From contig NC_087256.1 in the NCBI RefSeq assembly GCF_037042905.1, positions 26,350,001 to 26,414,000 on the forward strand: a DNA stretch of 64,000 bases, in the 5' to 3' direction. A program made the position numbers and the translations under genes. Below the pieces are notes generated by a model that saw only the letters and a program-made list of their open reading frames with translations, made no database searches and was not told the origin of the DNA. Below are positions 11,208 to 63,104 of this stretch, piece after piece. Every line of letters starts with the position of its first letter. The stretch's first letter is position 1. This DNA comes from Lytechinus pictus. Taxonomy: Eukaryota.

Positions 11208-11362
11208 GGACCCGTTTCATAAAGAGTTACAACTGTTGTAACTTTGCCATTATGGCAACTACCATGGTAACTTTGATTTTGACTGGCTGCTGAGCCCTGT
11301 TGCCATGGTAGTTGCCATAATGACAAAGATACAACAGTTTTAACTCTTTATGAAATGGGCCC
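11208..11362. mobile_element. Short palindromic MITE (second copy at about 3058-3192)
   Basis: CCCGTTTCATAAAGAGTTACAACTGTTGTAACTTTGCCATTATGGCAACTACCATGG arms around a GATTGGCTGCTGAGCCC core. Confidence 0.75.
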
Positions 11363-14300
11363 TTGATGCAATTTACAAATTTAAATCTGATCTTATTTCA
11401 ATTTCTCTGAAAATCTTTTTATAGTCAGTCACAGTGTGAGGCAGCCATAACACACATTCAGATGGTAATAAGGGCATAATCATCTCTTTTCCTCAACAAT
11501 GCTTACAAGGGTTAATAAATTGCCAATTCGTCTACTACCAACTCGTCCACTCACCACATGGTCTACTTTCATTAAGTCTAATGCAATTCTGTCCATCAAC
11601 AGTTCGTCTACAACCATTTGGTCCAATCATCACTTCGTCTAATCACCATTTTGTCGTATAACCTTTTGATCTAATATCCATTTCCTTCTAATTCATTTTG
11701 CACAATTAACACTTAGTCCAATTAGACCAAATGGTACATATATATGGACTAAATGGCAATTGGACCAACTGGCCATTAGACGAAATGGTGAGTGGATGAA
11801 TTGGCAATTAGACCATGCGTATAGTGGACAAACTGATGGTAGACCAAATGGTAGTAGACGAGTTGGCAACTGGACAAATTGGCAATAAACCATAACAAGT
11901 ATTTTATAAACTATTGCCCCATACACTTCCAAATCAGATTTTTGCTCATGTGACATAAAGATATCACTACCATAAAGTAGAATTTTCAAATTTATAAATA
12001 CTACAATTCAATTATAATACATTCAAATATAAAGGGAAATTGTGAATATTTAAATAAAAACATATTTAAGACAGGTGGAATAGATTATCAGATCAATCAG
12101 ATTCAGCAGAATTTACAATTGAAGCACAAACCTTCATTACATAAAAATATAATGCATATATTTTAACAGAACTATCACTAGACTTGAGAAATAGAAGAAT
12201 ACTTTTTCTGCCAATATCAAATTTACAGCAGATGCAGAAAAAACGAAAGTAGCACACAGACCTTATAAGGAATGATTTGAAAGATCGTGCGAGGCAGTAA
12301 AACCTGGTGACGAGAACAAGAGGATCACAATTTTGATAGAAAAAAGGTCAATCCCAGATATAAACAATCATATCTGATCAATCTCTTATGATCAAATCCT
12401 TTAACAAGTGGAATGCCTCTGGCAGTCTCGCCTGCATTATGCGATTCAAAATACATGTAGCATCAGTGCGGACTTTAAAAACAACTAATATATAAGATGC
12501 ATAATTATTTATTGAAAAAACACCATTCATATGATAATAATAAAATTGACCCCAAAAGACCTGTGACCTTGATCATGTGATCTGAAACTCATGCAAAATT
12601 ATCAGTAATACTTGATTACCCTTATGTCCAAGTCAGTGGCGTAATGAGCCAAAAATTTTGAGGGGGCTAGATGTGGCACATCACGTAAAATTAATAAAAA
12701 GTTGCGAGCGAGCAAAAAATTTGACATTTTTCTTACAAAAATGTGATATATTTTGACATAATATTCAGAAAATAATATCATATTTCACCCTTTTCTTTTC
12801 TTGGTCGTAGTTTTTCTTTTGGGGGGAGGCAAGAGCCCCCCCCCCATCTGTATGCCAGTTGTACCAAGTTTCATGAAATAGGTCCATTTATGTTTAAAGC
12901 TATGACAATTAAAAAACACGTTCTGTAACCTTGGTTATTAAAGATTTCAATGTTGATACCACCAAGATGGTAGAAGTTCATTCACCTAAATGACCTTTGA
13001 CCTTAATCATGTGACTTGAAACTTGTGTAAGTCGATCAGCGATACTTGATTACCTCTATGTTTAGGTTTGATGAACTAGGTTCATATACACTTTCAAGGT
13101 TATGATGACAATTCAAAAACTTGACCTTGTTTAAGGTTTCAATGCTGACAAAATGAAGAAATCAAATAAAGTACAACATTTGTTAGGCTGGCATCGATAC
13201 ACACATTTATCAGCCAAAAATATTTTTCAGTTTCAGTTTTGGGTGTATCGATGCCAGCCTAATAAATGTTGTACTTGTGAAGCATGAACTTTACAAAATA
13301 TACCTTCCATTTTTCTATATTAATAATTGATTGATTGATTGATTGCATTTATTCTTTTTCATTCCAAAATTTAACAAAAGTTACAATGTATAGCAAAACA
13401 CAAAAATATAATATACAGAAATGAAAAAAGGGAACCCACTGGAAAGCAAAGCTTGTTAGTATGGGTTCCCTGCAATAAATAGTTAATTAGAGTATATATT
13501 TGATCAATGAAATTCAAATCGTAAATTAAAAAGGTTTGTACAATGAAAAAGAATACTAGTGGGGTCAAGCTTTTTATGCCTACTATGTTACAATTAACAA
13601 AAAATATTATTTCATATATACCCCTGCTGTATAAAAAAAAACATGAGTTCAGGAGTGTGTGAACAGACAATCACTTGGACAAGACAGGACAAATACTAAA
13701 AACAAAACAAAGACAAAAACAAAAAAGGCACACAAACAAAAACAAAACAGGACAGAACAGGACAAGACAGAAAAAAAAGAAAAGGAAAAGAAAGATAAAG
13801 AAAAAAAAAGAAAAGGAAAATAAACATCCACCCTGATATAAGTAGTGTTTTAATACACAGCATTATGAAAATACTACTTTGTGCATTTTTTGTGCTTTTG
13901 TACAAAACATCTTCCAATATCAATTTTTAAAGAGTTAATGACAAAAGTGAAATTTATTACATGTATGTGGAATTAAATAGTATCAGGCTCAAAACCAGCA
14001 CAAGCCTTACACTACATGTATTTTGAGCACAATAGACCCAATGAAAGAAAAGAGTAAAATGGTTTGAGGTATTTGGAAAGCCGAAAGAGAAAAAAAATAT
14101 ATAACTTTCAAAATTAAGCACAGAAAATGTGAGGAAATCAGTCTCATGTATAAATAAGAAAGCACCTAAAGGAAAAAGACACACATAGATATTAGTACTG
14201 CTATGAACATATATATATTGTTTAAAATATCAATAGTACAGAAAATGAAAAGGGTTGTACATAAAAAAGTTTTGTAACCTACGCAATATGTAAACAACAA

Positions 14301-15479
14301 ATGGTAACTTATTTCCATTCAAGAATGTTACTTTATATTGTATTTGCTGATTTAATTGCTAATATAGATATCTATTTCATATTTTTATCAATAAATTTCT
14401 TAGAAAAGCTTTCATACATGTATGTCACCTGTGAAGAAGTTCATTGATATATCACTACATTGAAAAAATATATTCATATATGTGTTAGTTATTGAATACA
14501 ATTTCATTTGTATCAAATATGAGTTAAATTGCAGCACTTTATAAGATAAATTTTAGAGGTTTATTCTATCAAAATTGTTGACTTTGATTACAAATCTATA
14601 TTAAGGCATATATTTTAGGCAAGTCCATGCAAATAAGCTCTATTTGAAGAGTTTCTGTTTACTACAACACAGTTCATACAACTTGTTCTAATAACAAATT
14701 TACAAGAACAGTTATAAGCTACTGAAATCCTTCAATCTGATTGGCTGATAGTAAATTTGTTATAGAAATTGTGCATTTGTTATTATAACAAGTCTTTATG
14801 AAATGGAACTCAGATCATACAAATTATTTAACCCAGCAAATGTTTTAGTTTCAAACTTTCAAACATATATTTCATATCACGCTTGTGTAAAATAAATCTG
14901 ATGATTAGAATTATAACATTTTCCCTCTCTAATATTGATAGTTTTGAAAAATTGTCTTTTTTTGTTTAAAATCACAACTAAGGAGTTTCTAGATTGCACA
15001 GCGTAATAATATATGAATTCTTCTTGAGATGAGGAAAAAGGAGCTGCTCTGAGTGCAAATAGAAATGATTAAGATGAAAGTTTTTTTTTTCAATTTGTCA
15101 TTACCTTTGGTCACTTGCGATGAAAAGAGTTGAACAAGCTTCTTTCTACAAATCAACAACCAGTGCGAAATTATCTGGAGGTCTAGTTCATCCAGTTTAT
15201 TACACAAGGCCTTTGATTGGTCGACTCGAGTGAAAGTGTTAAAAAGCCATCAGGCATTTTACCAAAGTCAGAGTTGATTATTTTCCACCAAGATCCAGCG
15301 AGTTTCTTTTCATGGCAAATCCTCATGCTTCATCATAGACATCTAGACTAATGTTGACAGAAGACAACAAGACTGATGTTGATGGAAGGTCTTGTGAATG
15401 ACTATCAGCGTTACATATAAGGTTTGGCCTGGGGATTTGTGCTTTCATGGTTTACACATCAAAGCTAGCACATGCTTCA

Positions 15480-15705
15480 GCCTACCTGTGGACCAATCGC
15501 TTGCTGATTCAGACGAGGCCTCTGATTGGTCAATTCTGTACCTATAGGCTAATCCTTCCATGCTGATTCAGACAAGGCCTCTCAATTCAGTACCTGTAGG
15601 CTGATTATTCCCTGCTGATTCAGACAAGGCCTCTGATTGGTCAATTCTGTTTCAATAGATTAATCCTTCCCTGGTGATTCAGACAAGGCCTCTGATTGGT
15701 CAACT
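15480..15705. repeat. About 59-bp tandem repeat overlapping the P450 stop codon
   Basis: TGATTCAGACAAGGCCTCTGATTGGTCAA units at about 15505, 15564, 15616 and 15675. Confidence 0.85.
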
Positions 15706-18700
15706 TTAGTGAAGCTCGCTGAGAGTTCTTTTGGCCTAGCCATGGGTAGCCATTTGTAATCAAGATCTTCATCTTGGTCGCCTAAAGTCCAGTTGTAACG
15801 TCCAACTAGGTACTGACTCACTTTCTGTATTTGATCAAAGAAGAAAAAATATCAATTTTTTAAATCATACACTTTGTTGACTGTATATATATCAAGAAAA
15901 TGCATAAACAAGAAATATAAAAGGCTATGTTACTGTCTCAATACAAAAGACAGTACCAAGCTGAAAATAGTATCCTTTCTGACCCAAATTATTTACAGAA
16001 GCGACTAGGGAATAAATATTCAATGGAAAATAGTAAAAGAATGGGAAAATAAGTTTATAAGTATGAAAAAAAAATCATTATTACATTTAACAAAGGTGTA
16101 CATTATGAGAATCATATATCAGTAGAAATATATCTCAGTGTTAAGGACAAATTATAGTAATGTACAAGTACATAGTCACTTATGAACATTCGAATATGCA
16201 TAAATAAGGACTGGTTATACAACTGACACCATATATGTATTTTAATTCACTTTTAATCATTCCACCTGGAAAAAATCAAAAAATTCAATTTTCTACATGC
16301 AATATTTTATCTAGATACATGTAGTTCATTGACTATATTTACCTTAATCAAGTTTTTCATGAGTGATGTACCAACACAGCATCTAGGCCCATCACCATAG
16401 CAAAATAGCAGTTTCTCCTTTTCTTTGGAACTGTGAAAAATAATAGTAAAGAAACTTTATTTTTTACTTAACCTGATGACTTCTAAAGTCTCTAATTTCC
16501 AAAGGCTTTCTACAAGGACTAATAGGCTCTTGCCGTCAGAGGGTTAGCCCTTCTTGACTGATCCTGTATTTTCAATGATATACATGTAGGAGGAAATTTA
16601 AATCATTTGCTGAAATTCAAGGATACATATGACCAACTGTTACAAGACAATAAAAGGTATTGACCCTCCTCTTTAGTGGCAAAGACTTTTTCTTTTATTT
16701 ACTGATTCATTTATTTTGTTTAAAGGCATAAATAATAATAGCTGGATTTATTAAGCGCTATTTGCCTGAGGATACAAAGTGCTGCTATTGTTACCCCGGC
16801 ATTAGCCGAGCTGCCATATAGGTGCTAAAGCATTTAAGGAATTTCTTCCTACCAGGTACCCTTTCACATCACCTGGGTTGAGTGCAGCACAAAGTGGGTA
16901 AACTTCTTGCTGAAGGAAAACATGCCATGGCTGGGAATCGGACCCACGTCCCTCAGATTGAAAGACAAGCATCATAACCACTAGACCACGATGCCCCCAC
17001 ATAATAAATACATAATTCCAATGTCCAAGGGCCTGAAAGGCCCTTTTTTGGGGGGATTTTGGGGGATTTGTGACTGAATTCTATTTGATTGCATAAATCA
17101 TTTCTACAGCAGGCAAAGCAAAAGATTTACCGGGTCTCAGAGCACATTGCCCCAAAATGTAACAAACAGTTATAGTTTGCAAAGAACCCTAATACATAAT
17201 TCATTTTCTCTTGGTTTAGAAGCCAAAGCATTGTCCTTGTGTCTAAAAAATTTGTTTCCCCATAACGAAAAAAAAAATCAAGGCCAATGGCTTAGGATTT
17301 CTCTCTTTTTTTTAAGGTACAATGTATAATTTGAAAGAGCTCCCAAATCTACATTTAAATGAAGATCTGGCGTTGTTCAGGCAGGAGTGTACCCTGATTA
17401 CAATATGGACGATGTTTTACAGCCCTTTGCCAATTGAAATAAGAATTATATTTGTTAGGGTTTGAATTTGAATTAAAATAAGTCGGAAGGTTTTATTAGA
17501 GCTGGTCGTTTTGGAATGTTAAAGGCTTGCTGGAGAAGTTTCACTATATTGTAAATACAACTTAAGACTTTCCACCCAGTAACTAAGATTGCATCGATCA
17601 ATCTAACCGACAAGTCAGATGGTCTGGTGGTACAGTTGCTGACCGGCAATGGGTAGATGAGAGGTTCAAATCCTGCTGGTTCCTATATCTTTTTCTGACT
17701 TATCAGATATATCAATCAATGTGATCTCATTTACTGGTTTGAAAGCCATAAATTGGATTTCCAAAGTTTTGTTTCTTCCTTACTTGTCCGCCCATCTTGT
17801 TGGATCAAAGGTGTCTGGGTTCTTGAATACATCAGGATCTCTGTGGGCGATGGAGGAGACGTAGATGACTGCATAGCCCTTGGGCACTTTGTAACCATCA
17901 AGTATGAAATCCTAGAAATAAATAATTTTTTAATAATCATAAGAGTTCATCTTGAACAAGTTTAAAATCCTATACTTTCACTATGCTTTGTACTTGTAAG
18001 ATGCTAACTCATACATTTACACACCCACCCATTATGCTGGTTCCGTGGCATTTGCTCTGGCAACAATTGCTCCGATGGAAAAATTTGCACGTTAAGTGAA
18101 ACATAAAAATTGAAACCCTAACCCTTATCTTTACATTATTCTGAACCAAAAACTCCATTTTGATCCTATCGATAACCCGATGCCCTCGGAAAATTAAGAC
18201 CGGGGTCCCATGACACAAAGGTTAGCGATTGATGGCTAATTTCAAAGGACAATTCTGATTGGTCCATAGTCAGTCTACTTAGCAAAATGCGCATGCAACG
18301 ATGATCTTGCTTGGTCATTACATTTAGCGATTAATCGCTAACCTTTGTGTTAAGGCACCCAGAGCAAATGTTGCATGAGCATATGTTGTGTTACCTTATT
18401 TATATAGTTTCTCTCCCTTATTTCCTTCTACTCCCCCTCCTATCAACTCTCTGCCGAAGAATAGTAATGGTGCACTGAAAATGTACCTTTTATCAAATTT
18501 GTTTTTCTTTTAAAAGTTTAAAAGTTTTTAAGTTGTCTAACAATGATAAAATAAAGATGTTTAATCCCTGCATATTGACTGTTTCCAGACAAATTTCAGG
18601 GTTCCCAGCTTTTCAAGAAAACAAAATTCCCTGATTTTTCCCTGATGAAATTAATTATTCCCTGATAATTATTCAAACCCATTCCCAATTTCGCATGTTT

Positions 18701-21700
18701 TCTAAGTTGATGCAGTGAATTACACGTATTTTCAGTATAAACTTAAAAACAATAATGTAAGACTAATTAGTACCAACCTAACCAGTCATTCTATGGATAT
18801 TGTTTTGATATGCAACAAAATATAACATGGTCTGACTGACTACCGTACTTTCGACTTTTGGGCTGATCAAAATTCCCTGATTTGAGGTATTTTTTCATCA
18901 AATTCCCTGATTTTTCCCTGACTGGAAAAAAGTCAAATAATTTTCCCTGATTTCCCTGATGGGCTGGGAACCCTGAATTTACAACACCAAGGATAGTAAT
19001 TATTTGTCTCAGGCATTTGTGTATTTCAAAACCACATCATGCATCGCATCATCCTTATTCATCATCATCATCATCCCTGTAAATATTGTCATCATAATCA
19101 TCACCATCGTGATCATCATCACCATCAATATCATTGTCACCATCATCTTCATCATCATCACAATCATAAACACTGTACTGTCATCACCATCAATAGACAT
19201 TATGCATTGACGTCACTGTGCCACTATCTTAGCAACTGAAGCCACTGCTTTGCATGTGCTGGTAATCTGCACCTGGCGCATCTCTGACAACTCCCTTTAT
19301 GAGTATTCCTATATCCTCTGAGGGAGGGCGCTATGAGATTATGACATCATATGCATAAGATTGATGGTGATGACTGTTGAGTGGATTTTTTTAAATGAAT
19401 ATAGGCCAAAAGGAATACCTCTCTGACAAGTCTCCTCCCTCCCAGGACTGGGGGCCATAGTCTCTCTGTTTCCAGCAAACACCATTCAAGATAATCGCTG
19501 CTCTCTCTTGCCATCTCTTGCATGTTATCCTATACAGTAAGGACAAATAGTCAGAACTTATTCATGTTAGAACCTATAAATTCATAGTGAAAAAAAGCAA
19601 CAATAACGACAACAAAAAGGCAGTTTATCAGCAATTCTACTGCATAATTAACTTTTTGTACGCCCAATCCTAATTTTCCTCCATTCTTGCTAAATACCTC
19701 ACGGAACTGTGCAAGTTGTGATCATTTCAAATTAATTAGAGAAAAAATGATTTCAGGAACGGCCCACAAAGCTGGTCGGACATACATATACTATGGAATA
19801 ATTCTTATTGTATAGTGCTCCTATCTATGAGAAGTGACCGTCCGCATTCTCGAGCACTCCCCATCTTATTAATCCCAAATTCATTAACCCTACCGGAGCT
19901 ATACAACATGTAGAGCTCGAAATTAAGAATTCAAAGGTGAAGGGCCATTCTCTATTACGGGCACTTCCTCGAAAGGAAAGGTGGTGCCCAATTTAGGGTC
20001 ATCCAAGGCTATCAAAAAGGACATCAATAGTAAAATGTACTTTTGAAGGGGACACATGCACTGGGTTACCACAGGGCACCAAGACCTCAAGAAAAAGGGC
20101 AATTAAGTCTACAAATATCATGAATGCAAATCGGAGGGCATTGGAGGCCATATGGCCTTGGGTTACTTGGAGCCCTGAACAAAGTAACATTTTGAGGTCA
20201 AAGGAGCCAGTTCATGTCAAATACCAATTTACCTCACCTAGGTCAAGATATTGGTGTGATAAAACATGGAGTTTCATGAAATCTTAATATTCTGCAGAGT
20301 GATACAAATTAGACTACCATTACACATCATTTTGCTTAACGAGGCACATTGGACTTTTTTTTTCTCTTCTTTTTCTTAGACCCGATAGCTTAAATTAGAT
20401 AGAAAATAATGTCACTTGATAAATTAATTGGTCAATGAAACTATTTGTCCCCATAATTGTGATTCTAGCAGTTATTTCATTATTCACTTGCCTAGTTTAA
20501 AACATGGTTTTAAAATTAGGTTTTTCCCATTTAATATTTCACCTTGCTTTTGGAGCAGAGGGCCAGTGTGAACGACGTCAGGAGTGAAGCGATTGCTTTC
20601 GGCACCAGGGCGGAAACAAAGGGTAGAATGTGTTGCTCTAGCTCTGATTGGTCCTTAAATCCAGCTTGCCTGGCTCTTGTTAAGAAAGAACCCTTGTCTG
20701 CCTGGCTTGCGAGACGAGTTCGTATTAGCTCCAAAAGTTTGTCCTGGTTTATAGGGAAAATGCAAAATGATGCACATCTATGTAAGACATCACTGATATG
20801 AGATCAACAATGTAGAATTATCATGAAAATGCTTTTTTTTTTATAATTTAGGCTGGCCGGGGACCCTCTTGGTCCCACATATTCAGTAATTAGTACATTT
20901 ATCTGGCAATATAACTTATACTGTGTCAGCTTCAAAATACTGGAATGATTTGCCTCTCACAAGCAGCCAGTCCCCATCCCTAACAATTTTCAGAATGGCA
21001 TTATAAACACATCACTTTCATAGTTTGTAGTTTGAAGATTATATAATTATAATATTCCACAAATTATTTCTTTGTCAGCACTTTGGGCCTTAAGGGAAAA
21101 GTAGTAATGATGACGATGATTATGAGTAAAAAAGCCCTGATTTATAGCAGTTTTATATATCAAAGAGGAAAAATTGTGATATTTATAAATAATACTGATT
21201 CTGAAATTATTGTGCACCTTGATCATCCGATCCAATCAAAGCTCTAGCTTTCCCCAGGAATAAACAGAGTTCTTATTCCAATCCCATGTTTTCTGACACT
21301 GCACTTGGCTGCACACAGAGGAGTAGTAAATACATGTAATATGGCATGCTTTTTTTGTGTGTGTAAGGGACAGTGTGAAGCAACATACCTTAGATTCCAC
21401 AGCTTGTTTGCAGGATGAAGACCAATAAGAGACTTTTAAGTTCAGGGGAACAGATATCACCCCTGAATTAACCAAAAAAGGAAGAAAATACTCTTTAAAC
21501 ATATAATTATATCTCAACTTCTACTAAGTATCCCTGGTCACAGTGTTTCTTCTCAAAGATCCCTGCCACCATCATTGGGTCAGATGCATAAAAAGTAGAA
21601 ATTGCACGCAAGCAATTACTTTAAGTACAAGCATTAGCTAGCCAAGCAAAAGATCATGCTTCAGCAATTGCTTTATTTCATATGCATAACCCTTTGCTAG

Positions 21701-30341: not shown

Positions 30342-31252
30342 TTAACTAACTCATATGGAGCTCCGGCCCGCTTCCCGGAGCTTTCTGGCCTGGGTTAATT
30401 ACGAACATGACTGAACTGACGTTAACTAACCTCGTACGAGACGACTAGTGTGAGAGTGGGCCCTGGGGCTGGGCCTGGCTTGCATTTTTATTTTATAATC
30501 TTGAGACAAGATCTAGATGAATATTAATACTATAGTAATTAGAACATCATTTGGTAGGTTTTTTATCAATTTTAATAAAAAAAAGTTAAAAAACCTGTCT
30601 ATTATACTGACGAGTGACGTCAGTGTCCTTTTATGCTTTTTGTCTTTTCTTCTCTCTGTCTTTGCTCTGCCTTCATGGCCTTGCATTGGCTTAGGCTTAT
30701 AAGTCATATTAGTTCGTAAAAGTACTTTCTTGACTACAGCCAAACATGGTGAAGTGAGGATTCTAGACTAGACCCCCTATGCACCATTTGTTAAATTATC
30801 ATGTTTCTTATCCAGTGTTCATAGAATACTGAATAGTGCAGAAAGAAGAGGAAGATGACTCCACTTACCTTGTCAGACCAAAAAAATTATTTTATTCAAA
30901 TTGGTTGGACTCCAGATCCAGTGCAGTTAGAATCTGTCATTTTAATTTGAATCATTCTCTTCATTCTCTTTGTGTGGCACTCGGCTGACTCGCACTTATA
31001 CTAGCTCTATTGTTGGAAAAATGGATTTGCATATTACACAAATATGATGTTTATTATTTGTAAATATAATGATGCCTTGTCATTGCGCCAATAAGGCATA
31101 ATGATGACTGGTCAGTCTTCTTGGATTGTGATATTGATCAAATTTGATGGGGAGAATTGATGGAAAGGCAAGAGTATGCTGAACTCAATGTCCATACATG
31201 TATTCTTATCCTTGTAAACAGAAGATCTGTGTCTGCCTGAAAAGACTCGAAG

Positions 31253-52200: not shown

Positions 52201-55200
52201 TGCACAAGGGTGTGTTGGAGATTTTGGCCCGTATTCTGAAGTCAGGTTTAACTTAGACCATGGTCTAACTCTGTGCTAAAATTATGGGAAGCCAAAAGTG
52301 TCAAAATTTTTATTAAGTTGTATGTTTCGTATGTTTACTGTGCTCTTTCCTGATTCATCGATGGTGCAGACAATAATCTATTTATACTTCCTACACAATT
52401 ATGAATGATTTGAGACCCAAATGAGGTGAAATATTATCTCTACTGTTAGTGATTTATGTAACAATTGGCTATCCATACTTAAACCACAACTTTAAACCTG
52501 AGTTTAAGTTAAACCCGACTTCAGAATACGGGCCTTTGAGTGTGTGTTCTGGGACTCATTAGTTCAAATCAATTGTTACTATGGAATGCCGGTGATGCCG
52601 TGATTGATTATCTATATTTTGATATAATTGATTTATTTTCCATTAAAAGTCAAATTATGAAATACGATACATCGAACATTTTAAAAGAAGCTGTACAAAG
52701 TGGAGGGGGATCTTGGCCAACTTCAGGAGGAAGAAGACGATGTTGAAGAATGAGCAGCAGAGGTGGAGGAGGAAGAAAAAGAAGAGAAGGAAGGGTAAAT
52801 GAAGATCTAACAATGAAGAGAAACTAGAGAATAGAAAAAGAAAATATACGTGGAGGAGGATGGGTAAGTGAAAAAAAAAGTAATAAAGAGAAACACAAAT
52901 TGTAATCCTTGAATCATTGTATTTTCTGTGATTGCCTATGCAGATCCAAGGTGTACAGCAAGTCCACACAGGTCTCATCAAGCAGTGGACGATCGCTAAG
53001 GGGTGTGGCTTGACAACAAACCAGGGATCGAGTGCTTCTATGGCACCAAGGTAAGTTAACATGGAACATGTTATGGATTGACTTAAGCAGTGAAGTTCAA
53101 TTCATTAAATGTTTGCTTGTTTATAAATTCAGGCTAGTATTGACAATCTGTGAGCGAGCAAGTTGGTGGATTTTTAAACATTGGAAGGAGAAACATATGG
53201 AATCACCATTCAGAGTATTTGTAGCTCGTTGGGAGGGTCATTCATTTCATTCAGATCGTTTATTTTCCTTTTTGAAAATTTCCAATTTGTTTTGTACATG
53301 TTCAAATTTATCCATTGATGGCCATTGCTTACAAACTCTGAACCTTGGAGTAAAGCATTCCTTAATTTTCGCACAATGTCTCTCAATTAATCCAGACTAG
53401 AATCCATTCTCTCGGAAATGGGCAAAACCCTCAAGACCATCTTCACCCGCTGCTACGTCCACCGCAACGCCCCCCTGATACGCCCCCCATCCCGCTACCT
53501 GCCGGTCATCGGGGACGTGCGTGCATCCCTGGAAGACTCCCTGACCCTCTACCACGAGTACCTTGCGGTGCGGGCGGAACGCAACATCACCATGACCAAC
53601 TACCTGGAAGACTTTCCGGGTCTGGTGCACTTCGTCCATGTGAACAGGACCACCGACCAGGTGCTGGCGCCCTCTATCAGCGTCAGCTGTGAATCGGAGC
53701 ATGTCGGTGGCAAGAAGAAACTTCTCCAAGAGAAGGTGAGTTCTCTAGATATACATGTAGGCCCGTATCCTGAAGTCAGGTTTAATTTAAACTCTGGTCT
53801 AAAGTTGTGCTCTAACTATGTATAGCCAATTGTGACATAAATCTCTAACAAGAAAGGTTCATAGTATCAGCTCATTTGACTCACAAATCATTCTTAACTG
53901 TCTGGGAACGATAAATAAGATAGTTGTCTTCATCAATAAAGAATTGGGAAAAGCACAGTTGACGTGAGCAACATACAATGTAAACAAATATTTTGACGTT
54001 GTTGGCTTTCTGTAATTTCAGCACAGATTTAGACCATGGTCTAAATTAAATCCGACTTCAGAATGCAGGCTATAAAGTCAGAAGTCAGAAATCATTCTTT
54101 TATTAAAAATTCTTGAGATACATCTGATCCAATGCTAGGGTCTCTCTGCTCCCTGATCAATTTGATCAAGCTGGTTGCTTGGTCTAGCTAATGATCACTT
54201 TGTGAACAAATGATTCTGTGTGCAACCAAAAGGATGTATTGTAGATTATTAAAGATAAATTCCAGTTGTGGGAACGATCTCAAAATGACTTTTTACAGAA
54301 TTTAATATAATGATGACCGAAGTGTCTGTTTGTATGAATAAAAAATATGTGCCAAAGGATTCTGCAAGAAATTGTGTAATTGCTGAGAAATAAGCAAAAT
54401 AAGCACGGATTCGGTCACTTCCGTCGGGTCTTTATTCCAGCAATAATAATACACTGTCCCACGTGTGCCTATCTGTGTTGGCGATCTTCAGTGTGATCGT
54501 TTTTTAGCTAGATATTATGATTTCACAAAGTTCAGTTTATGTAACTGTACCAGATCTAGATCCACGATGATATATCAATACTTTACCTTGGTTTTACAGA
54601 CTTTCTCACGAATTCAGTGTTTTACTGCAACTACGTTCATTTAGCTTTAAATGAATATCCAACCAACAAAATTTGTCAGAAATTGTGATCAGGAACCTCA
54701 GGATTTTGGATTACTGTCACTTAGTAATATAATTATTGTTATATCTTATATACCAGGAAGATAGTGGATCATTGAGCTCGGGCGGTGGAGTGGGTGGGGC
54801 TTTGGGTTGAGGGAAAAGAGGTGCTTCCTCTTGTCTGCTGTCTGCACCTCATGTTCCGCTGCCTATATACATGTATAATCTGTTTGCAAATATGGGTAAA
54901 AAGGGTAATGCGGTAGGTTTACCAATATTGTCCCCAGTTACTCTTTATCCACTGGCAGCTACCCGCTGCTGTTTGATCAACTTGATGAAGGCTTATACCT
55001 TACCGATCAATGTAGCCCAGTAAGAGGAATTCTGGTACTTTGATCGACCCCAATTACCCCTGATCTACTGCTAGTCCAATCAACTTGATTATTGTAGTCC
55101 TTATTGGTTGATGTAGCTTATTGACTTTGATAGACCCTTTGGCTTTGTGAATTCCACAAATTGTTATTTTTATTCCGTGTGTATAAGGATAACATCTTTG

Positions 55201-58200
55201 ATGTATCTTACTGTTATATGCAATCAAATGTGAAATGAAATGAATGAATTGCCCTTTCTTTCAGGTTTGGAGCATGGTTGAGCAGTGTCACGAGAAACTT
55301 CAGCAAGGCATCGTGATGGAGACGGTCCGAGAAGGAGACTTCACTCTCTCGTATCTTCTGTACTTTGAAGACCCAGGCGTAAGTTGCATGCCAATGTAAC
55401 ATTCAAGATCAGTGTGAGCGTTGGTGCTGAAAGTCGTGATAGTGATGATTGTGATTTTTGTTATTGTACGTGATGTTAAAGAGAGCATGAATGCTTGTAA
55501 GCAAGTAACCAGAGGACCGAAGGCTTATAGTCCTCTCCGAGGGACCTTTTGAAGAGGATAAATCCTGTAGCAGAGGGCACTAGTGCACCAAGTGGGAATT
55601 GAACCTGGGTCATCGGATTGCAAAACCGCCGCCCTGAGATATTACTACACTATCTACCCTACACAGGGGCCAATAAAACAGAGGGGGGGGGGGCTAAACC
55701 CCCCCCCCCCCTTTTTCTTCCAAAACTGTGTCCAAAAACATAAAAATTACCATCTGATTGTGATTTTTTGCATGTTCAGCCCCCCCCCCCACAACTTTTG
55801 GCTCAGCCCCCCACTTTCAAAATTGCTCTGGAGCCCCTGCTACATGTAGCTCCATCACTGAACATTGATTTTACAAAGTAAAACCAATTGCATGACTGGT
55901 GAGAACAGTCTGAGAAGACTCAATTCTCTGGTATCTCCTCTACTTTGAAGACCCATGCATAAGTGGCTCTTTGATAGAAGATTCAAGTTCAGTGGTAGTG
56001 CTGGTGCTATTGTTGAAAATGTTAATTACTACACTGCCTATTCTAGCTCCAACACTGAACATGGAATTAAAAATGTCACCGATTTCTTGACCAGAAGCTG
56101 AACACCAAGGCCCGCATTTTGAGCTTGAGTATAATTTAAACTCTGGTCTAAAGTTGCAGTTTAACTATGGATAGCCAATAGAAGCAGATATCTGACATTT
56201 GACACGCAAATCGGTCATAACTGACTGGGAATGATAAATGAACTAGTTTTTTACATCAATAAAACATTATGAAAGACCAACGTAAGGATTGGAAACTTAT
56301 GTGAATGCAATTTTGAATCAGTTTGGCTTCCCATAATTTTAGCACAGAGTTAGACCATGGCCGAAGTTAAATCGGACTTCGAAATACGCGCTCTAGTATC
56401 ATACTAGCAAGAATCACTTTTCAAGTTTGCACCTACAGTGTATGGCTGGGGTGAAATTGGTGCTACCATCAACACCAGTGGTCAATAATGAACTGGAAAT
56501 AGCCAATTTAATCCTTCACATATCATGTTTCATTAGAATATGGCTGAACTCATAACCAGTAGGTTATAAACATTACATAATAAACAAAGTTGAATCTAAC
56601 GAAGAGCCTGTTTCATAAATACTTTGCCATTATGGTAATCACCATGGAAACCATGTAGATGTTGCATGTATGCAGCCCACATGCATTGAATGACTTTATG
56701 AACTGGTTTATGCCACTGAAAAACTATGGGCATGATACGCATGATTTAAAAAGGTGACCTGAAACCTCCGTTTTTCGTAAAAACCTGTGCTTTATTTCAA
56801 ATATTCAAAAACTTAATGCAAATTGCAAACAAATTTTGCACATTATAAAAAGATAGAATGTATACTTTCATTTGATATAAATAATTGCTCTGGTTTCTTT
56901 CAAAGCTTGAAGTTATGAGCATCTGAAAAAAACATCCAAGCTTCGAACGTAATTATCTCAAAATCTTGTATTGGAGACCAGCCAAGATTTGTGCCTGTTC
57001 CTAAAATCACTGACATGATTTGATTGTTGCAACACCTTTTCTTCCGTCCCACAGGGTCTGCTTGTTTTTAACAGAGGGCTCCCCAAGACTACGAGGAGCC
57101 CAGTTCCTGGTATACTAGCTGGAAAATATTTCAAGTAAGCAATTTGATGGGGTGTTTATCATCTATGCTTGCATGAAAATTGTCATAATTATGATATGCC
57201 ATGAAAAGTTCCTTCTATCTTACCCCTAGTCAACATTATTTCTAACCAAAAAGTAGATGCTAAGATTCTATACCCCAAGATGGGCAATGCAGAAAGTAAC
57301 TCAGATGAATTGTTTGGATTGTAATATCTTTAAATTCTCTGCCCATCGATTAGTGTGTTAATGACTGTAAAATATAATTTATAAGCAAGATCCAGTTTTG
57401 TGTACAAAATTTTTGCAAAAAAATTATCAAACAAATTTGTGTTGTCACTGTTGTTCACTCTCAGATGCATGTCAGATTGTCATAAATTAATTTGATATTG
57501 CTTTGACATTACAATTCATATTGAATCTGTTCAGTTCTGCTTGAAATATCTGGATGAGATTTTTTTTTTTTTTTTTAATTCTCCCCTCATGACAATTTTA
57601 TTCTTAGATAAAATGCACTGCATCAATTCATTTACAAGATGAATGTCTCAGAAAGCAATGTTGTTTAAATTCACTGCCTAAACTGTGGCTATCGTTTTTG
57701 TAGGAAAGAGACGGATGGATTGCATTTTACGGTTGTTGTCATCATCTTACCATCATCTGGGTCGTAGATAGTGACAAGTTGGAAATAGATTCCCTAGACC
57801 AAATGGACAATATTCTCAAAAGAGGTTCCAATCGTACCATGTTACAAAATCATGGAAGATGCAGATTTTGTGCACATAAATTAGGCTTTCATTGCATACA
57901 CTGAGAAAATTCCAATTATAAATGCACACTTTTGGCAAAGGGCACCAAATTTGTGCATGATAATCTGAGAAATCTGCATAGTCCATGGTATAATTGAAAC
58001 CTCTTTTGAGAAAACGTGCAAATAGGTTTATTCCATGTGGTGTAAATTGTAGTCCAAGTAGACCAACTGCTTAATACCATATCAGTCAATTGCGTCTCTA
58101 ATACATTATCATCCATTATTACTTTTGTTCTCTGCAGAGAGGTAGTGGCCCATGCCTTTCCGGGATTGACTGGGGTGACCTGCTGTGAGCTGTTCTGCAT

Positions 58201-58303
58201 CCATCTTTCAGTGGTCCCCTCGCCGATGATTGCCAATCACATCCGGAGGTTAAGGATCATGCTACGCTCTGGCGATGCTATTGCTCCGGTAACCCTGCTT
58301 TGA
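31253..58303 (+). CDS. HPS1: Hermansky-Pudlak syndrome 1 protein homolog (BLOC-3 subunit); 14 coding exons, about 841 aa
   Basis: Exons 31253-31369, 32205-32354, 42466-42587, 44465-44573, 47587-47738, 48075-48291, 48861-49196, 49736-50083, 51874-52041, 52944-53050, 53396-53735, 55265-55378, 57055-57134, 58138-58303; GT-AG, phases consistent, 2526 nt. Blocks recognisable from HPS1: [79 protein letters not shown]. Confidence 0.92.
32471..32790 (+). mobile_element. tRNA-derived SINE
   Basis: Same head (GTGGTCAAGTGG...GGTTCGAATCC) and core as the 23384 copy; (ATT)n tail. Confidence 0.85.
33356..35080 (-). repeat. 3' LTR (1725 bp)
   Basis: Begins TGTTGGGACGG, ends TGTCACTACA. Direct repeat of 39448-41180. 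PPT (AGGAGGGGA on the minus strand, about 35086-35094) is adjacent. Confidence 0.95.
35345..38353 (-). CDS. pol: Retrotransposon Pol (PR-RT-RNaseH-IN), expressed by -1 frameshift from gag
   Basis: The 963-aa track ORF extends upstream without stops through [13 protein letters not shown] (protease) to the gag end. RT motifs [23 protein letters not shown]; RNase H VDAS; integrase HHCC, DDE core and KGPY. Confidence 0.95.
38296..38356 (-). promoter_or_regulatory. -1 programmed ribosomal frameshift signal (G GGA AAC plus predicted pseudoknot)
   Basis: Slippery heptamer 38356-38350 in gag frame; 5-nt spacer; stem GACCAG..GGGTT / AACCC..CTGGTC; loop GGCGAC complementary to downstream GTCGCC. Confidence 0.8.
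38344..39249 (-). CDS. gag: Retrotransposon Gag with CHCC zinc knuckle
   Basis: 301-aa ORF (first ATG at MSQEDAD). [22 protein letters not shown] and [13 protein letters not shown] are typical of CsRn1-clade Gag. C-terminal [18 protein letters not shown]. Confidence 0.93.
39427..39444 (-). promoter_or_regulatory. Primer binding site complementary to the tRNA-Trp 3' end
   Basis: Minus strand TGGTGATCCCGACGTGAT, 3 nt inside the 5' LTR. Matches the eukaryotic tRNA-Trp 3' end (...AUCACGUCGGGGUCACCA) with one G-T wobble. Confidence 0.85.
39448..41180 (-). repeat. 5' LTR (1733 bp)
   Basis: By eye it differs from the other LTR by a 7-bp insertion (39658-39664), one extra A in a homopolymer and one substitution. 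Confidence 0.95.
41661..41976. mobile_element. About 310-bp MITE family, copy 1 (others at 52226-52535, 53761-54072, 56110-56392)
   Basis: TIR GGCCCGTATTCTGAAGTCRGGTTTAA with a shared internal sequence; four copies in HPS1 introns in both orientations. Confidence 0.85.
42800..43830 (+). mobile_element. Degenerate L2/CR1-group LINE 3' fragment interrupted by another repeat (about 43045-43680)
   Basis: Translation IQNAAARLL...[22 protein letters not shown]...HGLAPGYV, resuming as NSLP...[10 protein letters not shown]. Similar 3' remnants at about 2440-2620 (-) and 20870-21020 (+). Confidence 0.75.
45226..46496 (+). mobile_element. Internally deleted hAT transposon with an N-terminal zinc-finger remnant of the transposase
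   Basis: TIR CAGGCCTGAGA / TCTCAGGCCTG, 8-bp TSD ATTCCACC. Frameshifted remnant at 45786-46032: [31 protein letters not shown]...[fs][23 protein letters not shown]. Confidence 0.85.
50842..51115. mobile_element. MITE (related copy at about 25927-26198)
   Basis: TIR GGGCCCCGTCTTACAAAGA ... TCTTTGTAAGACGGGGCCC. Confidence 0.75.
51255..51845. mobile_element. Kolobok-like MITE
   Basis: TTAA|AGGGGAATCCAACC ... GGCTGGAGTCCCCT|TTAA. Confidence 0.8.
52226..52535. mobile_element. About 310-bp MITE family, copy 2 (inverted)
   Basis: Near reverse complement of 41661-41976. Confidence 0.85.
54253..54646. mobile_element. Kolobok-like MITE
   Basis: TTAA|AGATAAATTCCAGTTG ... CAACT..ATTTAGCT|TTAA. Confidence 0.7.
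55664..55839. mobile_element. Small hAT-like MITE with 5-bp TSD
   Basis: CAGGGGC ... GCCCCTG termini, TSD CTACA. Confidence 0.65.
55880..56010 (+). pseudogene. Decayed duplicate of HPS1 exon 55265-55378 and its flanking intron
   Basis: GTATCTCCTCTACTTTGAAGACCCATGC-ATAAGT versus GTATCTTCTGTACTTTGAAGACCCAGGC-GTAAGT; donor GT changed to AT. Confidence 0.75.
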
Positions 58304-60220
58304 GTCCTGATGACAGTGTGAGGATCATGCGTCGGTCAAGAGATGCAGCCATTCCAGTAATCTTGCTTTGTTTAGTGGCAACATTTCAAGGATCTTGCTA
58401 CGCTCTGGCGATGCTATCGCTCTGGTAAATCTGCTTTGAGTCGTTATGACAGTGTGAGGATCGTACTTCACTCAATAGATGCAGTAATTCCAGTAATCTT
58501 GCTTTGTTCAGTGGCAACATTTTGAGGATCGTGCTATGCTCTGGCGATGTTATCGCTCCGGTAACCCTGCTTTGAGGAGTCATGAAAGTTTGAGGATCAT
58601 GCTTCACTCAAAAAATGCAGTCATTCCAGTAACCTTGCTTTGTTTAGTGGCAACATTTCAAGGATCTTGCTAAGCTTCGGTGATGATATCGCTCCGGTAA
58701 CCCTGCTTTGAGTCCTGATGAAAGTTTGAGGATTGTACTTCACTCAATAGATGCAGTCATTCCAGTAATCTTGCTTTGTTCAGTGGCAACATTTTGAGGA
58801 TCGTGCTATGCTCTGGCGATGTTATCGCTCCGGTAACCCTGCTTTGAGTCCTGATGAAAGTTTGAGGATCACGCTTCGGTCAAGAGATGCAATTTCAAGG
58901 ATCATGCTACGCTCTGGCGATGCTATCGCTCCGGTAACCCTGCTTTGAATCCTGATGACAGTTTGAGGATCGTACTTCACTCAAGAGATGCAGCCATTCC
59001 AGTAACCTTGCTTTGTTTAGTGACAACATTTCAAGGATCTTGCTACGCTCTGGCGATGCTATCGCTCTGGTAAATCTGCTTTGAGTCGTAATGACAGTGT
59101 GAGGATCGTACTTCACTCAATAGATGCAGTCATTCCAGTAATCTTGCTTTGTTCAGTGGCAACATTTTGAGGATCGTGCTATGCTCTGGCGATGCTTTCG
59201 CTCCGGTAACCCTGCTTTGAGTCCTGATGAAAGTTTGAGGATCACGCTTCAGTCAAGAGATGCAATTTCAAGGATCATGCTACGCTCTGGCGATGCTATC
59301 GCTCCGGTAACCCTGCTTTGAGTCGTGATGACAGTTTGAGGATCGTACTTCACTCAATAGATGCAGTCATTCCAGTAATCTTGCTTTGTTCAGTGGCAAC
59401 ATTTTGAGGATCGTGCTATGCTCTGGCGATGCTTTCGCTCCGGTAACCCTGCTTTGAGTCCTGATGAAAGTTTGAGGATCACGCTTCACTCAATAGATGC
59501 AGTCATTCCAGTAATCTTGCTTTGTTCAGTGGCAACATTTTGAGGATCGTGCTATGCTCTGGCGATGCTTTCGCTCCAGTAACCCTGCTTTGAGTCCTGA
59601 TGAAAGTTTGAGGATCACGCTTCACTCAATAGATGCAGTCATTCCAGTAATCTTGCTTTGTTCAGTGGCAACATTTTGAGGATCGTGCTATGCTCTGGCG
59701 ATGCTTTCGCTCCGGTAACCCTGCTTTGAGTCCTGATGAAAGTTTGAGGATCACGCTTCAGTCAAGAGATGCAATTTCAAGGATCATGCTACGCTCTGGC
59801 GATGCTATCGCTCTGGTAAATCTGCTTTGAGTCGTGATGACAGTTTGAGGATCGTAGTTCACTCAAGAGATGCAGCCATTCCAGTAACCTTGCTTTGTTT
59901 AGTGACAACATTTTTAGGGATCACGCTTTGCTCTGGTAAATCTGCTTTGAGTCATCATGGAAGTTTGAGGATCATGCTTCGGTTAAGAGATGCAAGTCAT
60001 TCCAGTAACCTTACTTTGTTTAGTGACAACATTTCAAGGATCACGCTCTGCTCTGCAAATGCTTGAGTTACCATGCCGTGAGTTGTGTGAAAAGCTAGAG
60101 GATCATGCTTTCTTCTGGAGATGTTAATGCTCCAGATATCCCTGCTCATAGTCATGAAACTGATTGGAAGATCAAAACTACGCTCTGTGCTGCTATCGCT
60201 CCTGATGCTCTGCATTTAGG
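58253..60220 (+). repeat. 68-bp minisatellite with a 136-bp A/B higher-order period, starting inside the last HPS1 exon
   Basis: AGGATC-anchored units at 58253, 58321, 58389, 58457 and onward, roughly 29 units; degenerate at the distal end. Confidence 0.95.
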
Positions 60221-60262
60221 ATCACCCTTTTCTCTTTAGGATGATATCGACCCAATCGCCCC

Positions 60263-61057
60263 TAGGGACAGTGATTTTCCGTTTCAAAAAATTGCCTTTT
60301 CCGTTTCAGAAAATCTCAAATTCCGTTTCAGCATGTCAGAAAACGGAAATTCCGTTTCCCCATAGACTTTGTACACACGGAAAAGTGACAATTCCGTTTG
60401 TAAAATCACAACACGCACACTCGCACTGGTCAAAATTTGTATCTGCTACTGTACCAACAACACAATAAAATCCGTTCTAATCGGATCTATGCGGGTGCAT
60501 AAAATATTTTTACACACCCATTTTGCATGCATACATCCTCACCTTTCATATTATTAGCATTATTTCACGGTGAAATGATATTTCATCGATAATTTTGGGG
60601 GTTTTTGGACATCGTTATCATCAGTCAACGGCTTTTCCCCAATCCGCCATCTTGGATTTTAAGACCACGATATCGTGCTGTTACATCTTCAAACGTAGAG
60701 GGCAGCAACACACGACCGTGTACATGTAGTTGAACGACGTGCATATGTGAAGCCCAACCCGGCCGGCCGGGTACGGGTACGGTGCGGGGTACAAACGAGT
60801 GTGCTGATGTCGAGTGCAGTCACAATGTGTGAATTGTCATGATAGTAGCGAAGTGAGATCGTGTTTTCTGGGGTTTTTTGGCCATTTAATATTCTCATTT
60901 TGCTGTGATTTTGGAGTAATTTCTGTTGCTATTCTGTGTATTTTGAGGGAAAATACGTTTTCCGTGATTTTCCGTTTGAAATGCCACTTTCCGTTTCAAA
61001 AGGCCCTTTCCGTGAATTCCGTCCGTTTTCCGCGATCGCGGAAAATCACTGTCCCTA
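60263..61057. mobile_element. hAT-like non-autonomous element with 6-bp TSD
   Basis: TIR TAGGGACAGTGATTTTCCG, TSD CGCCCC, repeated TTCCGT subterminal motifs. Confidence 0.85.
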
Positions 61058-63104
61058 CGCCCCTCTCTAAGCTATGACCAAGTAAGAATATTCTTGATTT
61101 TCCTATTGACCAGTTGCTTGAAAAACCAGGAAATAAGGTTAGCTCCACGGAGGAAAAACGATTATATCCATTGATTTAGAATTTGTCTTCATGGCTCTAA
61201 GGCCCTCGATAATGTAGATTGTTGTATAGTATTCTATTCATGCATATATTTATTAATCGGTTGCTAATAGACCAAGACCGCTCTTGCCAGGTGTACCCCT
61301 TCATTGATAGCTAGGCACATTGGTAGGATGAGGAACACTTCCAGCTAGCTGGGATGTTGTCATTCCAGATACCCTGCTGTGCTGTGGTTCATAAGAAAAT
61401 AAGAATATATTTTATTGCTGTTGTTATTTGAAAGTCAAAAGTACATATACACTCCTTCAAATATGATTTTAAAACAGAACTAAACTTAAACAAGCATATA
61501 ATTTAAAATCCCATCACGGTTGGATGTAAATAGGTAAGTTATGTAATTTTCATGTTTTATGTGTATACAAATGGCAAGTATTAAGTGCCAGTAATATACA
61601 GTGATACTCAATAGTTTGTGGACCCCACCAGAAAATGAATATATTTAAAGTTCTGCCATGTTTTAGATGATTGGGAAGTCTGATGATAACATATTACATT
61701 CAACAAAGTTTGTTTCTCTGGGCTTGTTGAACATCGTAGTGTTGTTGTCTGTATTCAATACTTCGCATGAAGGGGTGCATTTTGTGGTGGGGCTCACTAC
61801 TTTTGAGCAAACTGTATGCTAAAAACAGACAAGTATACTTCCTGCAATTAAATGGTAAAAAAACAAGCTTTTAGAACTGTTTCTTACCAATGACACGAGA
61901 TGAAATGAAGTTAGAGTTGAGTAAAGTTGTTATTCAGGTGTGTGTCATCCAAAACTATATTGCTTCATTGTTTTGTACTTGTTAAAGGTACATGTATGTG
62001 CAAGTGTTCTTCTCATGACGAGTGCAATTTTGATTAACTTTATTTGTACCATTGAAGTATAATCATTTGGAATAAGTTATAAATCATAATTTTACTGTAA
62101 TTGTAAATGTCATATTTACTGGGGTATTGCATATATTTTATGGTCTCACTAACCAGAGGAGGCAACCTGAGGCATCATATATTATACAAATAATGCATGC
62201 AGCCGAGTGCGTTAGTGGAAATGCAGAGCACGCGAGGTTTCTTTAGATAGGTGCCGCACTGTGCACGAGCCGCTGGCGGCGAGTGCCCAGTGTGCACCAT
62301 CTGAAGAAACTGAGCTTTCTTTGCATTTACTTTTACGCACGACAGAGCAAGTGCATTATTTGTTTTATAAAATAGCAACACAGAAAAAGTTGGATGTCAT
62401 GTGACGAGTATTGGCCAATCGCGATGCTTGAAATAATACACCTATTTTATAATATTAATTCTTGGTTGTCCATATGTTCTGTTTTTATTCTTGCTTGATT
62501 ACAAGGAACATGCCGCTCCCCACCATTGGTGGGTTCCAAAGAAATTACATTATCAACTTTTTTGTTTTTTTTATGTTTTTTACTTAGTTACCCGTAATGA
62601 AAGATATACAATATTGTATATTTGTTTGGCAATGCATATGTAACTGAAATGCAACTGTAACCAGAACAATGCTACTGTACATGTCTGTAATTTGAATATG
62701 TTTTGAATATTTTCTGTTACTTTCCAAAAGATTATATTTTTTAAAGCTGAATAATGAAGGTTTTCTTTATATACATCTCAGACTGTATAATTAAGAGTGG
62801 TCTAATTTTTGTGACTACAGTTATATATTCTTTCCTATGTTTTTATACTAACCAAAGATTTTAGATATTCTATGTATACCGCATTGCTTGCATATTGTCG
62901 GATTGTTCATTGTTGGAGGAAATTTGACACAACTCTCAAATTACAACTCGGCAAACTTGCCTGCGATTCTTTATTATTATTTGTTTTTAAAGCCAAGTTC
63001 GATTTCTGATGTAGAGATCTAATTTCGATGGGAAAAAGTTAGAAGCAATCCTGAAGTGTTTATCATAGGCCAGATTGCTTATTTTCAATAAAGTTTAATT
63101 GAAA

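Follow-up and report, generated by a model that had tools for sequence, protein, structure and literature searches.

A palindromic 8-mer at TA sites in Lytechinus DNA: a candidate footprint of Tc1/mariner-type excision

The 64,000-nucleotide stretch of Lytechinus DNA analysed here (the window), which carries an HPS1 gene and a divergently oriented P450-like gene, raises a simple question: why does the 8-bp palindrome TACATGTA occur in it 26 times, when between 1.4 and 3.8 copies are expected? An earlier note on this DNA had proposed that the word is generated by insertions of 6 or 7 bp at TA dinucleotides, during the coming and going of transposons or by an unknown templated repair process. 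We consider it probable that the copies are excision footprints of elements of the Tc1/mariner type, a mutational scar rather than a functional element.

Abundance and form of TACATGTA

Exact counting, performed on the pieces of the window that are separated by a run of N at an assembly gap (21945–22106), confirmed all 25 positions listed in the earlier note and added one that it had overlooked, at 31195. In 100 dinucleotide-preserving shuffles of the window the word is expected 1.42 ± 1.14 times, with a maximum of 5. When tallied on both strands, the 52 observed occurrences compare with 4.1, 2.8, 3.5 and 3.8 expected under Markov backgrounds of orders 0, 1, 2 and 3, and with 7.2 under order 4; orders 5 and 6 alone come near the observed count, and these take their parameters from the 6- and 7-mers of the word itself. 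The excess that had been claimed thus holds, at about 15 times the expectation, against shuffles and persists through order 4 rather than vanishing under a higher-order background, and TACATGTA ranks first by over-representation among the non-homopolymer 8-mers of the window. The 26 copies span 12452–61996, which comprises both genes, their common upstream region and their downstream flanks; as had been noticed for the first 12 kb, no copy is present in the first 12.4 kb. The sites are as follows (no strand is assigned to any of them).

12452–12459, TACATGTA, downstream of the last recognised P450-like exon on the exon map
13958–13965, TACATGTA, downstream of the P450-like coding exons
14013–14020, TACATGTA, downstream of the P450-like coding exons
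14415–14422, TACATGTA, downstream of the P450-like coding exons
16316–16323, TACATGTA, adjoining the P450-like haem-binding exon and overlapping ATCTAGAT at 16309
16581–16588, TACATGTA, on the opposite side of the haem-binding exon from 16316
21331–21338, TACATGTA, P450-like intron, 606 bp from the assembly gap
25545–25552, TACATGTA, upstream of the first recognised P450-like exon, 3.4 kb from the assembly gap
26230–26237, TACATGTA, between the divergent P450-like and HPS1 genes
31195–31202, TACATGTA, 51 bp upstream of the HPS1 start codon
31670–31677, TACATGTA, HPS1 intron 1
37718–37725, TACATGTA, pol open reading frame (ORF) of a long terminal repeat (LTR) retrotransposon, established as a derived in-frame +6 at TA that adds His-Val
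41595–41602, TACATGTA, HPS1 intron 2, 415 bp past an LTR
43975–43982, TACATGTA, HPS1 intron 3, one of four copies in 224 bp
44036–44043, TACATGTA, HPS1 intron 3, same cluster
44077–44084, TACATGTA, HPS1 intron 3, same cluster
44191–44198, TACATGTA, HPS1 intron 3, same cluster
44858–44871, compound TAGGCCTACATGTA, in which a GGCC and a CATG unit have the middle TA in common, holding the TACATGTA at 44864
46561–46568, TACATGTA, HPS1 intron 4
46583–46590, TACATGTA, HPS1 intron 4, 22 bp from the copy at 46561
51459–51466, TACATGTA, HPS1 intron
53752–53759, TACATGTA, intron, 17 nt past the exon at 53397–53735, abutting a copy of a repeat of about 320 bp
54868–54875, TACATGTA, HPS1 intron
55841–55848, TACATGTA, HPS1 intron
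60721–60728, TACATGTA, downstream of the HPS1 coding exons, within a TA-flanked GG..CC element
61989–61996, TACATGTA, downstream of the HPS1 coding exons

The unit is a strict 8-mer. ACATGT is flanked by T and A in 26 of its 41 occurrences and by every other pair of bases in at most 3, and the 24 one-mismatch neighbours of TACATGTA are only slightly enriched in total (96 against 79 expected). There is about 0.3 decayed (one-mismatch) copy per exact copy, in the window and in the L. pictus locus L009 (below) alike; if the copies are neutral scars, such a ratio fits a mostly young population with divergence on the order of a few percent, as a rough estimate. A flank comparison across the window copies found no extended motif or common flank: pairwise similarity is at chance level and the contexts are unrelated. 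Nor does any copy lie within the 13 kb of the window that matches other parts of the window, and these two observations together rule out that TACATGTA is part of a repeated element. Three narrower candidates were also rejected. A tandem or microsatellite origin is excluded, as the copies at 43975–44191 do not form a tandem array and the window lacks TACATGTACATGTA; the copy at 53752 is not the end of the repeat family of about 320 bp that it abuts, as the family alignment runs further left and the abutment is probably coincidental; and the copies at 16316 and 16581, which lie in a 15-nt inverted match, are not the two ends of a miniature element, given that the P450-like haem-binding exon stands between them.

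The word is also in excess at some other loci. The HPS1 locus of the sea urchin Diadema setosum (37 kb) has 7 copies against 1.6 expected (P = 0.001), one of the 7 in the gene body, and the first 8.6 kb of L. pictus locus L009 have 20, all within 6.4 kb, against 0.2–0.5 expected. None is found in the remainder of L009, its retrotransposon copies at 8571–18220 included, in the L. variegatus locus L008 (21 kb), or at the HPS1 locus of the crinoid Antedon (1.7 expected); the HPS1 locus of the nemertean Tubulanus has 1 (0.5 expected). Among the loci sampled, then, the phenomenon is limited to sea urchins, is strongest in Lytechinus and is very patchy, with one copy per 0.3–2 kb in hot regions. The idea that gene bodies in particular are being seeded fits the window, where the patch coincides with the two genes, but does not extend to the Diadema locus, which has no gene-body bias.

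Insertions at TA in a young retrotransposon

One resident of HPS1 intron 2 provides a dated test bed for the origin of these words.

33355–41180, minus strand, BEL/Pao LTR retrotransposon: LTRs at 33355–35080 and 39447–41180, pol ORF at 35345–38236, DUF7041 gag-like ORF at 38344–39249
39656–39664, no strand assigned, TACATTGTA in one LTR, established as a +7 at TA that arose after the element's integration

The element lies antisense within the intron, and its pol carries reverse transcriptase, RNase H and integrase domains. Between its two 1.7-kb LTRs the only differences are a substitution, a 1-bp indel and the 7-bp TACATTG, and the element looks like a very recent, possibly still active insertion. 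Its gag-like protein shares 97% identity with a protein of L. variegatus and 98% with one of L. pictus, and the element's DNA is 97.5–99.7% identical to copies in L009 and about 92% identical to those in L008, which places the window in Lytechinus and probably in L. pictus. Both the pol (963 amino acids) and the gag-like ORFs are open. Members of this retrotransposon family stand in tandem or nested arrangement, with common LTRs, at L009:8571–18220 and L008:5275–14979, and L. pictus has two annotated gag-like genes, one of them truncated to 180 amino acids.

Comparison with an empty site was possible at 2 of about 33 window sites, both of them in this element, for which paralogous copies are available in L001 (a Logan contig, 93% identity), L004 (81%), L008 (L. 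variegatus, 92%) and L009 (L. pictus, 97.5%). For the unique DNA, ORF searches with an HPS1 exon that runs on into its intron gave relatives at 72–88% protein identity, with introns that cannot be aligned; in the closest of them, about 86–88% identical in the exon, the alignment ends at the splice site. At 37718 the window has ..GATTTACATGTAGGCAT.. where L001, L004, L008 and L009 all have ..TA-GGCAT.., so that six bases, which copy neither flank, are missing from all four; at the protein level MLDL--GIIR stands in nine pol homologues, the most distant of them 65% identical, and the window has two extra residues. Because four paralogous DNAs and nine proteins lack the addition, this site is a derived in-frame +6 at TA. 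At 39656 the TACATTGTA in one LTR faces a plain TA in the element's sister LTR and in two paralogues; LTRs are identical at integration, and a sister LTR with plain TA therefore shows a +7 at TA that arose after the element had inserted. The earlier proposal of 6- to 7-bp insertions at a plain TA is in this way borne out at every site open to comparison. Relative to its L. pictus paralogue the window copy has 79 substitutions and 7 indels, and 4 window-specific insertions of more than 1 bp are present in the element, two of which are the TA-site events at 37718 and 39656. Scar formation in this dated young retrotransposon would proceed at about the rate of substitution, and may locally rival point mutation.

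An alignment of 120 pol homologues was searched for the three possible translations of a change from TA to TACATGTA, namely HV after L, I or V, YM before Y, and TC. Apart from the HV of the window, one such case came up: in the pol protein P0021, from ENA assembly ERZ26222911, a YM seen in no other homologue directly precedes an invariant Tyr (LDPGD-YM-YVHRLR). It could be the translation of TAC ATG TAy and matches the predicted signature. That assembly is evidently from another sea urchin, since it also holds an HPS1 exon 72% identical to that of the window.

These comparisons bear on two other origins of the word. The first is substitution or composition, in the form of CpG decay of TACGTGTA or TACACGTA or of a higher-order background effect. 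One copy outside the window, at L001:2912, does differ by just one substitution from the TACGTGTA with which it aligns in the window, and TACGTGTA/TACACGTA themselves occur at 5 sites against 1.06–1.16 expected, depending on background order. However, the third copy, in L004, has CACATGTA, which suggests that ACATGTA was the ancestral coding sequence at this site; the L001 copy is compatible with a chance occurrence of the kind that the background predicts about twice per window. The precursor words are far too scarce, the order-4 expectation given above falls far below the observed count, and both comparable window sites are insertions, the L001 site being the only case of substitution met. 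A substitutional or compositional origin thus appears largely refuted, and we regard it as very improbable.

The second is an artefact of sequencing or assembly by which CATGTA is added at TA. Should L009 and the window belong to one L. pictus assembly, both of the densest samples would derive from it, as such an artefact would have it. Against this, the enrichment is found also in the independent Diadema assembly and the protein signature in a third (ERZ26222911); in the same assembly the motif is absent from retrotransposon parts and young repeats, and its sites stand in unique contexts. We know of no platform artefact that takes the form of CATGTA at TA, and give this explanation scarcely any credence.

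TA-flanked elements, related words and the excision reading

If the inserted bases derive from transposons, elements whose ends could supply them might be expected nearby. The window has four TA-flanked elements of suitable kinds (no strand assigned).

5776–6599, non-autonomous TA-flanked element with ends CAGTGCG...CGCACTG and long inverted arms, a candidate footprint donor type
9804–10039, TA-flanked miniature element with ends CACTC...GAGTG
46860–47518, TA-flanked 655-bp element with ends CAGTTGAGGCCAGAAGTTTACATAC, in HPS1 intron 4
60263–61057, TA-flanked 791-bp element with ends GGGACAGTG...CACTGTCCC; its GG..CC termini match the word TAGGCCTA

The first of these is the TA|CAG...CTG|TA element that had been placed at 5778–6597, and it is as described, with a perfect 40-nt terminal inverted repeat and TA on both sides; it is without a transposase ORF. 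The ends of the third are closely similar to those of Sleeping Beauty. The TA|CAGTG.., TA|CACTC.. and TA|CAGTTG.. ends account for the CA and TG of TACATGTA, and the TA|GGGACAG.. end accounts for TAGGCCTA. In these two words the bases between the TAs therefore match the terminal bases of TA-targeting elements resident in the window.

Words related to TACATGTA are enriched as well. The 9-bp variants that had been pointed out are present, TACAATGTA/TACATTGTA at 5 sites in the window against 1.07 expected (P = 0.005) and TACAGTGTA at 2, 25200 and 56434, against 0.63. After TACATGTA, and leaving two AT-rich simple words aside, the most significant of the 136 words of the form TA-NNNN-TA are again two palindromes, TAGGCCTA (4 window sites, 0.4 expected) and TAGATCTA (5 window sites, 0.79 expected; 3 sites in L009, 0.15 expected). 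Apart from sites given above, the mapped instances are these (no strand assigned).

313–321, TACAATGTA, 9-bp variant, word match
13382–13390, TACAATGTA, 9-bp variant, word match
17318–17326, TACAATGTA, 9-bp variant, word match
53974–53982, TACAATGTA, 9-bp variant, within a repeat copy
25200–25208, TACAGTGTA, 9-bp variant, word match
56434–56442, TACAGTGTA, 9-bp variant, word match
1014–1021, TAGGCCTA, TA-NN.NN-TA palindrome
23087–23094, TAGGCCTA
31869–31876, TAGGCCTA

Units of this kind are moreover chained through common TAs, as in TAGGCCTACATGTA at 44858 in the window and in TACAGTACATGTA (three times), TACATGTACAGTA, TACATGTACATGTT, TAGATCTAGATCTA, CATGTAGGCCTA and TACAGTACATGTAATAGATCTA in L009; we propose that such chains would result if elements repeatedly entered and left the TAs of a scar already present. 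When the window, L009 and locus L005 are pooled, A at -3 or T at +3 occupies 48 of 106 flank positions against a background of 32.7% (P = 0.005), a modest effect. Target flanks of the form ANNTANNT are preferred by Tc1 and Sleeping Beauty, and since the A -3 / T +3 bias resembles this preference, the flanks are in this respect of the Tc1/mariner kind.

A separate observation concerns the near-variants in L009. TACATGTT occurs there at 2266, 2460 and 2668, at a spacing of about 200 bp and with similar flanks (..TACATGTTT(c/g)AATG(a/g)AAGTGATT(t/a)AAATCAAT..); this trio appears to be a short local repeat that includes a one-mismatch word, and some near-variants would thus have been multiplied by duplication.

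The formation of footprints by excising Tc1/mariner elements is textbook knowledge, and the following course of events could produce the words described here. A cut-and-paste element of this superfamily with 5'-CA...TG-3' ends would enter a TA and duplicate it. At excision its transposase would cut two bases inside each 5' end, and the flanks would be left as TA with a 2-nt 3' overhang, CA on each strand. Were both overhangs kept in end-joining, the donor site would be closed as TACATGTA, TA-CA|TG-TA (+6), and one base added at joining would give the 9-bp forms (+7). Elements with other terminal dinucleotides would leave the rarer TAGGCCTA (from GG..CC ends) and TAGATCTA, and new insertions into the TAs of an old scar would yield chained units. 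With one scar left per hop and element number roughly constant, scars could come to far outnumber elements; re-insertion nearby would lay a dense local trail, which would cover the patchiness, the sub-kilobase clusters and the chaining.

Known systems resemble this scheme to different degrees. With Tc1 and Tc3 of C. elegans the resemblance lies in a duplicated TA target, ends that begin with CA, a scar made of the doubled TA and terminal bases, and a 2-nt stagger, which we infer here; they differ in that their +4 scar keeps 2 nt of one end, whereas the +6 scar here has the dinucleotides of both ends and is the top 8-mer of a region. Sleeping Beauty and the fish-type Tc1 elements with IR/DR ends leave TAC(A/T)GTA, which like the present scar consists of TA, bases derived from CAG/CTG, and TA, and the flanks of the present scars have a ANNTANNT-like bias; the Sleeping Beauty scar is, however, a +5 that comes from 3-nt overhangs. 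In L009 TACAGTA is enriched and is chained with TACATGTA, and the +5 word TAC(A/T)GTA is enriched in L009 and in Diadema. Minos, a Tc1-family element of Drosophila hydei, leaves a frame-preserving +6 footprint of TA and four element-derived bases. The four bases of Minos come from one end, through a heteroduplex of 4-nt overhangs, whereas here two bases from each end make a perfect palindrome. Excision polymorphisms in rice likewise show excision as a source of small indels near genes, but there repair is mostly untidy, and here the scars are uniform and as dense as one per 0.3–2 kb.

With regard to suitable elements in these animals, an intact Sleeping Beauty-like Tc1 element has been reported for L. 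variegatus, as the sole echinoderm case (PMC9777934), and Minos is described as transposing in L. pictus (PMC11361634).

A number of results weigh against the excision reading. An allele from another haplotype, species or paralogue in which an element occupies one of these TAs was not seen, and only two window sites were open to comparison. The window has no transposase gene or ORF, and no TA-flanked GA..TC element that would account for TAGATCTA was found. None of the 22 two-residue insertions in 120 gag-like proteins has the HV, YM or TC signature. The implied rate is very high, in that a 7.8-kb element with a single substitution between its LTRs already has two scars. The dominant scar, +6, is not that of the studied family members (+4 for Tc1, +5 for Sleeping Beauty): about three quarters of C. 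elegans Tc1 scars are +4, TACATA or TATGTA (PMC12632400), and these words are not enriched in the window (62 against 56 expected), nor are the +5 words TACAGTA/TACTGTA (10 against 9.45). Finally, repair after excision in rice is usually messy, a comparison of rice with a second species having found 94 excisions genome-wide, most with deletions or filler DNA and 8 clean (PMC4423477), whereas the scars described here are very uniform.

Several of these points would be accommodated if no transposon had ever occupied the sites and a domesticated transposase or other nuclease cut at TA, with repair adding a fixed CATG(+TA). Insertion at TA is seen directly and an element-occupied allele is not, the scar is more uniform than, and unlike, the +4 and +5 forms of the studied Tc1-family elements, and regional density is extreme (20 copies in 6.4 kb of L009, and all 26 window copies in or beside two genes). 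On the other hand, CA and TG are the exact end dinucleotides of TA-flanked elements in the window, TAGGCCTA matches a TA-flanked GG..CC element, and in L009 TACATGTA is chained with TACAGTA, the classic Tc1-family scar; nor is any repair pathway known to add a fixed tetranucleotide without a template. On balance we hold TA-targeted insertion without a resident transposon to be unlikely, and the more specific form of it, in which a TA-specific activity, perhaps an element-free domesticated Tc1-type transposase, writes the +6 and marks chromosomal regions in the urchin germ line, to be quite improbable. If true, it would make CATG between TAs a new class of templated or enzyme-dictated micro-insertion.

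The word might instead be a palindromic protein-binding site that is kept by selection, the retrotransposon insertions being incidental. A strict 8/8 palindrome with few degenerate neighbours that clusters in and around genes and is enriched in two distant urchin lineages would suit such a site. New copies have nonetheless arisen by +6 and +7 insertion in a retrotransposon ORF and LTR, where a host site is not expected; the 9-bp variant arises likewise although it breaks the spacing of the palindrome; other TA-NN.NN-TA palindromes are co-enriched and chained with TACATGTA; and copies in Diadema are not concentrated in the gene. Binding sites would also be expected to have an extended motif, a common flank or enriched degenerate versions, the first two of which are lacking and the last barely evident. 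We judge selection for a binding site to be decidedly unlikely.

We return to excision of Tc1/mariner-type elements as the favoured explanation. Among the papers searched, none connects TACATGTA with the scars of transposons or with the genomes of urchins; the TACATGTA promoter motif of Phytophthora (PMC11134190) belongs to an unrelated organism and context. We could not find a description of a uniform +6 palindromic scar that is the top 8-mer of gene regions, occurs once per 0.3–2 kb and accumulates at a substitution-like rate in a dated element. If the copies are excision scars, Lytechinus would preserve a history of cut-and-paste traffic that can be read from its sequence and is much denser than the elements, and transposon excision would be a major indel-forming class of mutation in a model deuterostome, one that can add two codons in frame to coding sequence, as in pol. 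Past transposition rate, local hopping and target choice would then be measurable from a single genome, and motif-finders would need some caution, the top palindrome in urchin introns and promoters being of mutational and not of regulatory origin. L. pictus can now be bred in captivity for laboratory work and accepts Tc1-family transgenes, which makes both the rate and the repair route directly testable, a matter of interest for mutation and transposon biology.

Genes, gap and other repeats of the window

HPS1 was mapped by tblastn with the HPS1-like protein of Diadema setosum as 14 exons at 31253–58300 on the plus strand, of which the exon at 53397–53735 is 69% identical to the Diadema protein. 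The P450-like exons lie on the minus strand, from about 25.15 kb down to the haem-binding exon at about 16.4 kb. The haem signature of the latter, CYGDGPRCCVG at about 16345–16443 (minus strand), is atypical in having Tyr in place of the usual Phe; no standard P450 signature pattern matches in the window, and the motif was recognised by reading ORFs. The assembly gap falls between two exons of this gene.

21945–22106, no strand assigned, assembly gap (N) in CAT/ATC-rich low-complexity DNA, separate from the TACATGTA phenomenon

By the exon map the gap is intronic, lying between the P450-like exons at 20534–20803 and 22286–22522 (minus strand), and no recognisable reading frame runs across it.

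Three other kinds of repeat deserve mention. A tandem array at 58252–60123, with a period of 136 bp (two 68-bp half-units) and about 14 copies, is without TACATGTA and begins within or directly at the end of the last HPS1 coding exon (58115–58300). The element of about 320 bp with GGCCCGTATTCTGAAGTC.. inverted ends is found at 41655–41982, 52225–52541, 53759–54074 and 56102–56399, all in HPS1 introns, and its third copy is the one that abuts the TACATGTA at 53752. A miniature inverted-repeat family with ends like (CA)GGGCCCGTTTCATAAAGAG is represented at 3061–3184, 11205–11365, 26942–27075, 25934–26197 and 50843–51115, and has a related copy in L009 at 7741–7829.

Some further words are over-represented. 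For the CRE-like palindrome TGACGTCA, of which about 1 copy is expected, there are 8, at 3235, 7156, 8610, 19208, 29064, 30141, 30615 and 51425, in unrelated contexts; in the window ATCTAGAT occurs 8 times against 1.0 expected, and ATTCGAAT 6 times against 0.6, two of them in LTRs. Runs of at least 8 G (or C) are strongly in excess in the window, with 56 8-mer counts over both strands where 3.9 are expected, and the result in Diadema is similar; long G runs adjoin several of the motif sites in L009.

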